Origin: Botryllus schlosseri
Lineage: Eukaryota
Length of the DNA stretch: 64,000 nucleotides
Assembly (NCBI GenBank): GCA_051294905.1
Contig: CM119386.1
Span: 8,804,001 to 8,868,000, forward strand
Direction: 5' to 3'
The notes beneath the pieces were generated by a model that had not been told where the DNA came from, did not search any database, and worked only from the letters and a program-made list of their open reading frames with translations. Both the position numbers and the translations under genes were made by a program. Shown in pieces: positions 5,001 through 35,000 of this stretch; positions within the stretch are counted from its first letter, which is position 1; each line of letters starts with the position of its first letter.

Positions 5001-8000
5001 CTGGCTTTCCGAATAGTTCTTCAACGTAAGCGCCAGCTTCAACATCAGGTGACCATGAGTATTCGGAATCGACCGCTGCCTTTTTGGCATCTTCCGCATT
5101 GCTAGACGCAGACACTTCTGGGCTGATTATCACGCTTGTTTCGCCGTTATCTCGCATAATCTTGTCACAGACTTCTTCCGGAGCTTCCGTGATCACTCGT
5201 GCCGTTGTAGCCGTCGACTCTGTAGACGTACTCGACACAAGCTTTGTGGTTGTGACAACGATTCCTGTCGTTTTCTCCGGGATAGATGGCGTAGAGGTGG
5301 TGGATTCGGTGCTCTTAGAGGTGGCTGTCTCGGATGTGGTAGGCGATGACACTGTAGTTGACGATGTCACAGGCGACGACGTCGTTTTTTCGACTTCCGT
5401 AGTCGTACTGCTTTCGACAACCTCGCCAGTGGTAGATTTTACCGTTTTCGTGGTTGTAACCTCAATGCTAGTACCGACCGAGCTAGTCTTCTCGGTGAGA
5501 GGCGTTGTCTTTTTGGTGACCGTAGTTGTTTCCGTTACCACTACTGGTGTTGTTTCTTTCGTAGATACCGTGGATGCAGTCGATGCCTGTGTGCTAGTAG
5601 TTTCCGCTGATAGGCTGCTCGTAGATACCGTAGATGCCTGTGTGCTAGTAGTCTCCGCTCCAGGGCTGCTCGTAGATACCGTGGATGCAGTCGATGCCTG
5701 TGTGCTAGTAGTTTCCACTGCTGGGCTGCTCGTAGATACCGTAGATGCCTGTGTGCTAGTAGTTTCCACTGCAGGGCTGGACGCTTCAGTCGGTTTTACC
5801 GTTGTCGTCACCGTTTCCGTAGTTGTTGTAATTTCAACCGGCGTGGTGATCAACAACCGACAGCTGCGCAATTCCATGCGCATGCTCAACTTGGTGTCTC
5901 CGTCTCTGATAGGCCAGATTTTAACCCTCTCGGCTTCGATTGGCTCGTCAAGAATATGCTCAACTGTTTCGCCTTCATTGTTGCCGCTAAAGACTTTGAT
6001 TGGTGATGACTCATCACTGAATACTTCACGAATCGCCTTCCATTCCCCGTCGCTGTAATATTCAACTGTATAACTTGGTACTGGAGATCCACCCAAGTCG
6101 CCTTGTGTTACGATTGATGTCACCGCTGTCTTTTCCGTCAAGAACACTTCCACATATGGCTTTTCTTCAGCTGAATCCGGTGTCCAGGATGGTTTGTCTT
6201 CATTGAAGTTCTTTATATTTACGGTACCGTGCTCACCGTCAGATGACTCAGTGCCCAAGATGTTAACGTCCGGTATATCGATTGCTCGCATGCCCATGCC
6301 TGCGTCGCAGAGTTCTGGAAAAAATGATGTCGATTCATTGAATATTAGCCTACATAGAGGCGTAGTTTTTCTTTGGAAGTAGGGTCGAAATTATTTGACG
6401 TGTACAAGGGCATTGTAGTGTAACAGTCTGCTGCGATGCTCGCCGTCTATATGTCAAAAAAATTCTGTGCTTATATGTCCACAAAACGGTGATCCTTATT
6501 TGATGGCGGGTTGGAATATGATGTAATATCAATATTGCCACATCTTGCGTCATTTTATAAATAATAATATTATACAAATAAAATGAGCAATCATAACGGT
6601 GAATATTGTTAAGAAATCAAGAATGTATTAGAATAGATATAATATAATAAACATTTGGCTTTGAGTAGAAGTAGTGATCTCCAAGACCTGTTGAAACTAC
6701 TTTAGGTGTAGGTGGAAAATGGTGATTTTAGAAGTACTAAAGAGAGTAGTTTGATCAAGTACATTTGGTCGAGTGGTCGCATGATATTAGTAACAGATCA
6801 AAATTGCGGCGTCCATCTAAACTCCAGTTATTGTGATACAGGAGCTATTAGACGAAGCCGTTGCGACAATCTCATTCGTGCCATGATGGACACACATCCC
6901 AAAACTGCTTTCAACTTCACAAAATTCCAAGTCCCGAAAGTAAGCAGTATTGCTGTTAAAAACTGCTAAGAAGAAGCGAAAGCATTCAGCAAACAATACA
7001 ACTCGAGTGCATGTATGCAAAACCTGAGCACTCCGAAAAAAATAGAACTACTTAGTTACTGAACAATGGCCACCTCCGAAGGCAGGTCGGAATACGATGC
7101 AAAATCAATGTAATGTCTTACATCATTTTAGAAATGTTCTACTGCCAGCATACACACAATTAAATATATGATTACAAGGACAGATTGTACAAAGAAATCA
7201 GGAATGCATACAATATAACATATAAATTAAACTTTTGGCTTAACGATTACACGAATACTTGCATCAATGCAGTTTAAAGCTTCATATACATTCGATCATG
7301 CCACTACCTTAACCAGCAACATAAATAAGTACATACTCTTAGTGGTTGTTTCATATGTGACAACCTTGCTTGTGGTGGTTTCGACTATAGCGGTGGTCGG
7401 TTTCGCCGGTACTCCCCCTGTGGTTGAAATCGCAACCCCAGTCGTGGTCGTAGGCGCCACCGCTTCCGTCGTTTCTTTTGAAATGATTGTAGTCGTTTCT
7501 GGCGTCGATTTACTTGAAGTAGGTGAGGTAGGGCTCCCAGTTACCGCCGCGGTAGTCGAGAAAGTTCCCGGTTTCTTGGTTGTCACCGAGACCGTAGTGG
7601 TGACACCCGGTTTTTCGGTCGATTTCGTGGTTTCCAAGGTCGTTTCCTCCGTCACTCCTGTCGACAGACTCGTTTTCGTGGTAGTAGGTGGGTGCTCTAC
7701 AGACGTGGTAGACACTAGAATCGCAGTGGTTGTGGGTCTAGAAACAAGCGTCGTAGTTTCCTTAGGCGTGTACGAATAGCATCCAATCACTGAGAATTTC
7801 AGAGCGGCCCGTTCTTCAAATCCAACGACTTGTATACGCAAAGCGTACGCTTTCTTCGCCGTCACAAACTCATTCGTGACTTCCTCATTTGCATTGGTAT
7901 TACCGTCAAATTCCTTCGGCATTAAAATCCACACAGGAGTGGTGCTTTCTTCGTTATCGGTCTTCACGTACACTCTGTACTTGCTCACAAACGCTGTCTC

Positions 8001-32000: not shown

Positions 32001-35000
32001 GAAAATGCAAATGGAAATGGAAAACGGAAAGGGTATATTATTGATGACTTGGTCGGAATGCTTAACGAAGAATTATATTTCATCATATGATATTGACTTG
32101 AAAATTTGACTCTGAGCCATATCCATCATACAATGAGAACGTGTCGAGTCAAGGCATTTCAGGGCAGTGACTCGAGTCATTCCAACACTGCCAGGAAGCC
32201 GTTTTCAGTGATGAAATCCAAAAGAATACACCAGTGTGTTTCAGTATATCAGGGACGATGGGCTAAAACCACTACAGGTACTGATAACACAATCTATTGT
32301 TTTGATTTGAATTCTGTTCAGCGTTCAATTCCAGTTTTCCCATTATTACCTTTTGTAACAGTTTCCGTGGTTGCAATCGGTGGAAGAGTCTTCACTGTAG
32401 TTGCCGTGACTTCACCAGATGTCGTCGTAACTGGTACTTCCTCTGTAACCGGGGAGGTTGTTTGGATAACGACAGTGGTAGTTTCGACAGTACTGCTCTT
32501 GGTAGAAGTCGACACTGAAAAGAAGAATGAAAAATGGCTCCAATGCACTGTATCTCAGAAGTTGTCAGCTCCACATCGTTACTACAATGGAGCACACTCA
32601 GTTGACCACACTATACAAGAAAAAGCATTCCCTTAATGAGTGATTAAGTACAACCAGACATTTTCTGGGCAAAACATGTCTATTAAGAAGAATTGAATAA
32701 TGTGGCTCAAGGTTGTAATTGATTAGAATTTATGCATATCAGTTACAAATTATATTATATATATACCATGTTCCACCATGTTAGGGTATGATATTTATCA
32801 TAGTCATGTGTCAAATTGAAGATGTTAAATATACATAGTGTCGGTTTAGGAACCTCACAACATATTAGCAAATATCCTACATCGAATCATAGACTACAGT
32901 GGCGCTTGCTCTTTGAAGGAAGTCATCATGTTATTATGACTCATGATTAAAATGACACCCCTAGTTTTTATCTAGCAGTTAATTATAATGCAAAATCATA
33001 AAAGCGAAGACAGCGTCTTAAATGAAGCTTTGTACCATGCACTGGGAATTCAGCAATAGGAAATTATCAAAACCCTACCTGGTGCTGTTTCAGGGCTTTC
33101 TGTTGTAGTCTTTTCCGGCACCAATGGAGTCGTGGTTTTCACTGTTTCTTCGACAGTTGTTGTTACCAGATGCGTAGTAGTAGGCACTGCATATGCGCAA
33201 CCGTAGATTTCAAAATTCAAACTAGCCCCAAGTTCAGACGTTTCCGCCACGACTATTCTGAGCTCCTCTGCCATAATCGGTGTAGGGAGAGCGACTCTAA
33301 CTGTTTCCGCATCATTGTTGTTTCCTGGAAAAAATATTTGAAAAGAACAGGTTCACTTACACAGTAAATATCAGTGGGATAGAATTATTACAACACATTC
33401 AATAATCGAGACTACTTTGACCAGCTCCGTTACACGGAATCATGCCTAAAGCATTGCATAGTGCGTTGTGCGTCTTGGACAAAGATGGCGAAAGTGGTCG
33501 TCGTTGATGCTTAATTAGAAGTAAATTTCGACTCAAGTACCAGGTGGAATCAAAGTAGCTTATGTTTGCTTTTCAAATTTTGAGATCAACTTTGCAGATA
33601 ATATGGAAATCCCAGTGTTTGTAAATTTTTTTTTTTTTTTGGGCCGTATCTTGGCCATGGTTATATTTGTCAGATTGATTAAATGATGAACATTGCCAAG
33701 ATATGTCCAAAAGAAAATCAATATCTACTCGAGTACTTCAAAATAGTAGTTGTCAAAGATTTTCAGTTTTTCCAAATAAGATTAGAATTAGAAGTAGGCC
33801 TATAGCTAAACTGTTTTTTTTTTCAAATTAGATGAGAACTAGAATTTTATCTACACATTTTTTTGCAAATTAGATCAAAATTAGAATTACCGAATTCGCG
33901 AAAACTTGAAAATTTAATCAGGTTCAGTTCGTATCAAGTTAGAGCTCATGCTCATAAGCACGACGATAGCAAATATCTGTACGACAAGCTTAGCTCGCTT
34001 CACACTATGCAGTTACCCAGCAGCCTTTTCAGGAAATCCGAAAATTAGACTTGAATTAAAGTTAGAGCATAATAACATTTCACAAATTAGATTGCAATTA
34101 GAATTGTAATAGGCGCAAAAAATTTTTCGCAAATTACATTAGAAATAGATTACCAGTATTTTGCTAGTCTCATTAATGAACTAGAATTATCTAGTTGTCC
34201 AAATCTAATAGGAGTACTTATTACTGACAGTCTCTGGTAGTGATCGGATGTAATGAACCCATAATTGCTATTCCGATCCTCACCTTCGAACACAGTTTCA
34301 GTGGCCTCTCCGCCCTCGGAACTGGCGTAACGGTAAGTCTTCCACCCTTTCCCGGCGTTGTACTTGAGAGAAAACTTCGTCACGTACCGTCCGTCCGAAC
34401 CACCCACCAAAGAGAGCTCGGTGACCTCCGTGATTTGGTCGAACTCGACTTCGACGTATTTGTCTTCGTCCTCGTCTACGGGCGACCACGACTGAGAGTC
34501 GGACATTCTCGCGTGTCTCGGCTCGGCGCCGTCCTTGTACGACGACGCGTGAATTTGAGCGTCTTTAATCGTTCCCGAAGTCATCCCGAGCTCGCTCTTG
34601 CAGACTCCTGCGAATAAAACAAGGAGCTAAAATTTTAAATCGCATCGCTTTCAGGCTTTGAATGCCAATACGTAGATATTCGATTTGTGTATAACTAGTA
34701 TGCGATCGTAACAGGTACAGAACTTTAATATACATTTTAATAAAACATGCATAACGTAAATATATTAAAACCTGAAGCTTTTCAAGCTGACACCTTCAGG
34801 GGCAAAAGGAGTTTCAAAAACTTGCATCTAACTAAAATACATACATCCAATTGTGACGTCAACAGGGTTGTAACCGAGTCACAAGGCTCCGATTTACAAG
34901 TCAATCTCGCTTTTATAGTTTTGATTCGAGTCAAGTTGAGTCCTTTTCTATTCACCAAGTCAAGTCTGAGTCCAAGTCCAAGCCAAATTTTATAATCCTT

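Follow-up and report, generated by a model that had tools for sequence, protein, structure and literature searches.

Evidence for an old tandem duplication of a nine-exon, five-discoidin-domain cassette within a predicted mucin-like gene of Botryllus schlosseri

The gene and its two exon blocks

The window analysed here is a stretch of 64,000 nucleotides from the 495.5-Mb genome of Botryllus schlosseri (GenBank assembly GCA_051294905.1, contig CM119386.1, positions 8,804,001 to 8,868,000 of the forward strand), and positions below are those of the window. It contains part of a gene that lies on the minus strand, measures about 102 kb and runs past the window start, and whose FA58C (discoidin) array includes two consecutive exon blocks, A and B. 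Very probably, a nine-exon cassette with five FA58C domains was tandemly duplicated once within this gene, whose predicted product is a secreted, polymer-forming mucin-like glycoprotein.

The domain order of the gene is EGF, three VWD-C8-TIL units, VWC/LDLa, 15 FA58C domains on Thr-rich linkers, TIL/VWC/LDLa modules that come after the discoidin array, and a C-terminal cystine knot. Its 5' part lies within the window, where Pfam recognised EGF, three VWD starts, C8, TIL, VWC and LDLa; the three N-terminal VWD-C8-TIL units were counted as present on exons that are not fully assembled. The Cys_knot match (24.7 bits, with a cut-off of 24) lies some 38 kb below the window start, divided between a pair of exons. 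When VWD and C8 pieces of the gene itself were used as tblastn queries on the 106 kb downstream, only TIL was found after the discoidin array, no VWD or C8, and therefore the layout is of the 3+0 VWD type. The gene, which is likely to be fragmented by automatic annotation, now has a verified exon model in which its 15 discoidin domains are delimited.

The initial annotation had described nine exon pairs of stated lengths and matching phases, and all 18 exons were found on the minus strand at those lengths, with AG...GT(GC) borders and a good polypyrimidine tract at each (Table 1). Block A spans 13129 nt (32514-19386) and block B 11598 nt (18934-7337), and their coding lengths of 4632 nt (1544 aa) and 4479 nt (1492 aa), respectively, are each divisible by three. 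The start phases are identical in A and B (1,1,0,0,0,1,1,0,1), and the cassette, which consists of nine exons, five FA58C domains and six linkers, is flanked on either side by phase-1 introns. Spliced A+B forms a single open frame, which bears out the earlier statement that both copies remain open.

Table 1. Exons, domains and junction intron of the FA58C array, in transcriptional order (PTS, Pro-, Thr- and Ser-rich)
Feature	Position	Strand	Length (nt)	Content and support
FA58C D1	33053..34626	-		Upstream, outside the duplicated unit; split 34284/33324; outer ends limited by open reading frame
A1	32350..32514	-	165	Phase 1; Thr-rich PTS linker; AG/GT borders; 75% aa identity to B1
A2	30515..30735	-	221	Start of D2
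A3	30089..30274	-	186	Middle of D2
A4	29542..29709	-	168	End of D2 and linker; contains the 25/32 motif
A5	29246..29483	-	238	PTS linker
A6	27872..27994	-	123	PTS linker
A7	24636..26248	-	1613	D3, linker, D4; PF00754 in two stretches, E=3.4e-24
A8	23300..23471	-	172	PTS linker; RNA: loose contig end at 21131 extends into its 3' end
A9	19386..21131	-	1746	D5, linker, D6, long PTS tail; Pfam E=5.4e-23; RNA contig coverage
Junction intron A9/B1	18935..19385	-	451	Phase 1; putative site of the duplication joint; spliced out in RNA of three runs from three studies
B1	18767..18934	-	168	Borders and RNA
B2	18022..18248	-	227	Start of D7; borders and RNA
B3	17549..17734	-	186	Middle of D7; borders and RNA; partial Pfam match, 8.9e-5
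B4	17115..17282	-	168	End of D7; borders and RNA
B5	16496..16736	-	241	PTS linker; borders and RNA
B6	13906..14022	-	117	PTS linker
B7	11552..13143	-	1592	D8 and D9; Pfam E=8.2e-25
B8	9082..9175	-	94	PTS linker; 26 codons less than A8
B9	7337..9022	-	1686	D10, D11, PTS tail; Pfam E=1.2e-28
FA58C D12 + D13 exon	4111..6314	-		Next after B9; acceptor 6314, phase 1
FA58C D14	1370..2140	-		Open frame; Pfam E=1.8e-13

Pfam detected two FA58C domains in each of the large exons (A7, A9, B7 and B9), and PF00754 exceeded its gathering score of 28.2 bits in the open frames with D1, D3-D6, D8-D11, D12 and D14, as well as in D15, which lies just below the window start (29.8 bits). D2 and D7 are each spread over three exons, and Pfam gave weak scores on their single small exons; an in-house hidden Markov model (HMM) built from the other 13 domains recognised both with E values of about 1e-29, against 0.9 or worse for 200 shuffled versions. 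The five FA58C domains that each block had been said to add are thus accounted for, by Pfam in the large exons and by the in-house HMM for D2 and D7. D13 (4670-5090) has diverged beyond Pfam detection and was placed by the tree alone. The 15 domains, of 142-167 residues each, all begin and end in Cys, and their nearest solved structures are the factor V/VIII C domains, lactadherin and neuropilin b1. The linkers, of about 70-170 residues, contain 36% Thr, 55% Thr+Ser+Pro and no Cys, a composition with which they would presumably be O-glycosylated, giving discoidin beads on strings.

Contigs from three older runs of the same organism, which come from three studies and are RNA by a tool's guess, were mapped to the stretch 16400-21200. 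The exons were covered at word depths of about 10-340, and depth was zero in four fully intronic bins. The RNA joints 19386/18934 (A9 to B1), 18767/18248, 18022/17734, 17549/17282 and 17115/16736 match the predicted borders after allowing for a 2-nt ambiguity and a 3-nt polymorphism, and loose contig ends at 21131 and 16496 extend into the adjacent exons. The A9-B1 joint indicates that both blocks are part of one transcript. Phase 1 at all three borders would allow either block to be skipped without a frameshift, and the blocks might then be alternative cassettes, or even separate transcription units, that are not both present in the protein. However, the contigs of all three studies link A9 straight to B1, a single contig (record 16 of run X8) covers B2, B1 and A9, and no skipping joint was seen in 16400-21200, so that we consider this arrangement very unlikely. 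Along the same stretch, the transcript contigs differed from the reference at about 1-7% of the positions in exons, and each run contained several alleles, which indicates that the species is highly polymorphic.

Similarity and descent of the two blocks

The proteins of blocks A and B are 55.5% identical across 1454 collinear aligned positions, and the segment ending in ELLGC, for which 25 of 32 identical residues had been reported, was recovered with that same count. In the self-comparison of the DNA, matches were limited to the exons (65-74%). An assembly artefact, either an uncollapsed haplotype or a false duplication, would be in keeping with the tandem layout and with nothing else; it is hardly credible for copies whose identity is just 55% at the protein and about 61% at the DNA level, whose joint is transcribed and each of which has an orthologue of its own (see below).

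The splice-proximal 300 nt of corresponding intron pairs scored no better than shuffles, in agreement with the initial annotation, which regarded the introns as unrelated. Because intron similarity has been erased, the breakpoints can be placed only to the flanking introns. The further claim that the introns of the two blocks carry different transposons did not hold, since copies of one 575-bp family lie in A intron 1 (31373-31950), A intron 7 (23890-24316) and B intron 5 (14813-15414). This family has an internal inverted match and, at about 90% identity, at least 4483 first-look candidates genome-wide. Its copies in the two blocks occupy non-homologous places in differing orientations and therefore represent independent later insertions, which fits a great age of the duplication.

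B intron 5 also contains, beside B5 (16200-16466), a dispersed repeat some 200 bp long, of which many chromosomes have copies that are 99-100% identical (at least 3783 first-look candidates). RNA depth at 16400-16560 was very high on either strand and in each of the four runs. Hairpin microRNA families gave sub-threshold matches only near this repeat, and Rfam at gathering thresholds returned nothing in 7000-33000. The repeat looks like a very young transcribed element of the miniature inverted-repeat transposable element or short interspersed element type.

The descent of the domains was analysed in a tree of all 15 FA58C domains of the gene (IQ-TREE, LG+C20; support given as ultrafast bootstrap/SH-like approximate likelihood ratio test, SH-aLRT). 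The grouping of the positional pairs had been set beforehand as the decisive point, and all five pairs came out as sisters: D2/D7 (100/99), D3/D8 (100/100), D4/D9 (98/98), D5/D10 (84/83) and D6/D11 (98/94). D13 and D15 join D6/D11 (95/92 and 93/90, respectively), and D14 was placed with D5/D10/D3/D8. A basal split separates two domain types, which take turns along the gene with one exception, the step from D6 to D7 at the A/B joint. The D12-D13 exon is an older paralogue of the two-domain unit of exon 9, and the cassette duplication may be the latest layer over an older array of alternating two-domain units, a history that would produce this order of types. Outside the gene, another FA58C exon, 44% identical to D5, lies about 9 Mb off on the same chromosome (chromosome positions 18020601-18021206) and probably belongs to a paralogous gene.

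The older two-domain units (D12-D13 and D14-D15), as well as a contig of another animal with three near-identical tandem two-domain exons, show the kind of step by which the present order could have been built without any block event, through serial duplication of single domains or two-domain exons. Nevertheless, nine exons, including four small linker-only ones, agree in order, length class and phase between the blocks, and the five positional pairs are sisters at comparable depth, which makes serial duplication extremely unlikely. The collinear exons, the tree pairs and the A9-B1 transcripts all argue instead for what the initial annotation had proposed, namely an intragenic tandem duplication of the whole nine-exon, five-FA58C cassette.

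Age of the duplication and selection on its copies

Between A and B, the nonsynonymous divergence (dN) is about 0.36 and the synonymous divergence (dS) is saturated (2.2 by NG86 and 1.9 by LWL85), with a third-position identity of 0.41. Owing to this saturation YN00 was unstable, and the dN/dS ratio between the paralogous blocks, roughly 0.1-0.3, is an upper-bound-type estimate. This ratio shows that both copies have been under purifying selection.

A search with A9 in 1.84 billion representative proteins gave two informative matches, P0001 and P0050, both called from contigs of run SRR25569784. P0001 shares 78-80% identity with A9 and 42% with B9, and P0050 shares 75-78% with B7 and 56-60% with A7. 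In the joint tree, A9 grouped with P0001 (100/100) and B7 with P0050 (100/99), with A7 as sister of the latter pair. Approximately unbiased (AU) tests rejected both A9+B9 (p=0.0004) and A7+B7 (p=0.007) as clades excluding the sequences of the relative, and the orthology stands in every 40-residue window, since the B7-P0050 identity exceeds the A7-B7 identity in all of them. The AU tests and the orthologue trees thus indicate that the duplication predates the split from the relative of run SRR25569784, and together with the saturated dS this upholds the great age that had been ascribed to it.

A young, lineage-specific duplication, in which one copy of each exon diverged fast and the relative has a single cassette, would be consistent with the long B9 branch of the joint tree (0.86, compared with 0.09 for A9) and with the fact that B9 and A7 orthologues of the relative were not found. 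However, the two clades that it calls for are those rejected by the AU tests, the fast copy would have to switch from A in exon 7 to B in exon 9, the inter-block dS is saturated, and orthology holds in all windows; a recent origin is accordingly very improbable.

Gene conversion in exon 7 after the split was rejected as well, given the higher B7-P0050 than A7-B7 identity in every window. In the centre of this exon (A7 about 25680-25030 versus B7 about 12590-11950), the fraction of identical codons is 0.59-0.72, compared with 0.3-0.45 elsewhere, and the dS of D4/D9 is about 0.8-0.9. This centre may represent an old tract of gene conversion, earlier than the divergence of the relative, or it may reflect codon-level constraint.

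Several observations weigh against the interpretation of an old duplication whose two copies are joined in one mucus protein. That P0001 and P0050 belong to one species is deduced from their shared run. The relative's A7 and B9 orthologues were not recovered, although a blank search proves nothing: a protein search with D10 only gave no match, one with D4 only gave just P0050 and a crinoid lactadherin-like protein, and one with the complete A9 was dominated by Thr-rich words and yielded P0001 and P0024 only. A third exon-9-type protein of run SRR25569784, P0002, has no close counterpart here. It groups 100/100 with P0005 (L004:3762-5573, run SRR23343704), and within this genome nothing matches P0002 better than A9 (44%) and B9 (42%). 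The origin of P0002 could be a paralogue since lost, an additional block in the relative or a sample that was mixed. Support for the split between the two alternating domain types is weak (76/92), and the search for block-skipping isoforms covered the stretch 16400-21200 only. A bulk raw-read RNA run of 2026 (X23) had almost no reads on the exons, which implies that expression is not ubiquitous and is restricted to some tissues or stages. Secretion, ligand binding, glycosylation and disulfide polymerisation of the product are predictions.

Mechanism, known systems and significance

The cassette may have been copied by unequal recombination between introns, and because it is phase-symmetric and its length is a multiple of three, the copy would have been in frame from the outset. 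Its retention could be explained if five further discoidin modules that bind ligands, and a gain of about 1500 residues, raised both the valency and the reach of a mucus polymer linked by disulfides. Hemolectin/hemocytin and lactadherin-type discoidin domains suggest, by analogy, that this polymer might be adhesive or agglutinating. The selection for length or valency suggested in the initial annotation is one that we infer only from purifying selection and retention. A further proposal is that the cassettes diverged in ligand specificity after the duplication, yielding a multi-specific lectin-mucin. Two points are tied to it, the loss from D10 of the C-x-x-x-MGM start motif and the longer branch of B9 (0.86 versus 0.54 for A9, from the same unresolved node), and we regard it as a rather unlikely possibility. 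In D10 (8560-9020), which has the longest branch of all the paired domains, the conserved MGM after the first Cys has been replaced and the sequence now reads CDEELLNEL.

Phase-1 symmetric exon shuffling and tandem duplication of cassettes are established in modular extracellular proteins. As in known exon-cassette duplications, the cassette is of phase 1-1, its copy is in frame and the introns have diverged past recognition; unlike the usual duplications of one exon or one domain, the unit is unusually large, with nine exons, about 4.6 kb of coding sequence and five domains. It is an ordinary growth mode of a modular extracellular protein, and neither the mechanism nor the protein class is new.

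The gene is of the gel-forming-mucin/hemolectin-like kind already described in invertebrates, where mucin-like proteins with F5_F8_type_C domains include insect hemolectin, whose VWD layout is 3+2 (Lang et al. 2016, PMC4948705). With the gel-forming-mucin-like proteins it has in common three N-terminal VWD-C8-TIL units, PTS regions, discoidin domains after D3 of the VWD series and a C-terminal cystine knot (PMC4948705). The closest named sequence is the Ciona intestinalis 'mucin-5AC-like' protein XP_026696163.1, with about 36% identity to the Ciona cluster. Unlike those proteins, this gene has 15 PTS-separated discoidin domains and the duplication of a five-domain cassette; CysD domains were not seen in it. 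Hemolectin and hemocytin, VWF-like insect proteins of clotting and nodule formation, likewise combine VWD-C8-TIL with FA58C, and an adhesive or aggregating role is plausible (PMC4948705, PMC4015701). In hemolectin the F5_F8_type_C domains lie between two VWD groups, and PTS regions are at most very small and present in some insects (PMC4948705), whereas this gene is without a detected VWD or C8 between the array and the cystine knot, and its discoidin array is far larger.

In the contig of another animal mentioned above (L005, ENA ERZ25067582), the three near-identical two-FA58C exons (4184-5839, 9980-11638 and 14046-15920) lie in tandem 4-6 kb apart and fall in the same 90% cluster. This expansion is independent of, and much younger than, the duplication described here, and the growth of discoidin arrays in VWD-mucins has recurred in different animals. 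The B. schlosseri gene offers a case of a giant mucus protein that grows by in-frame copying, and then retention, of a multi-exon, multi-domain cassette. Under the rather unlikely reading that the two cassettes diverged in ligand specificity, independent recent two-domain expansions such as that of L005 would suggest that discoidin valency in mucus has repeatedly been under selection, for example for the capture of particles or microbes.

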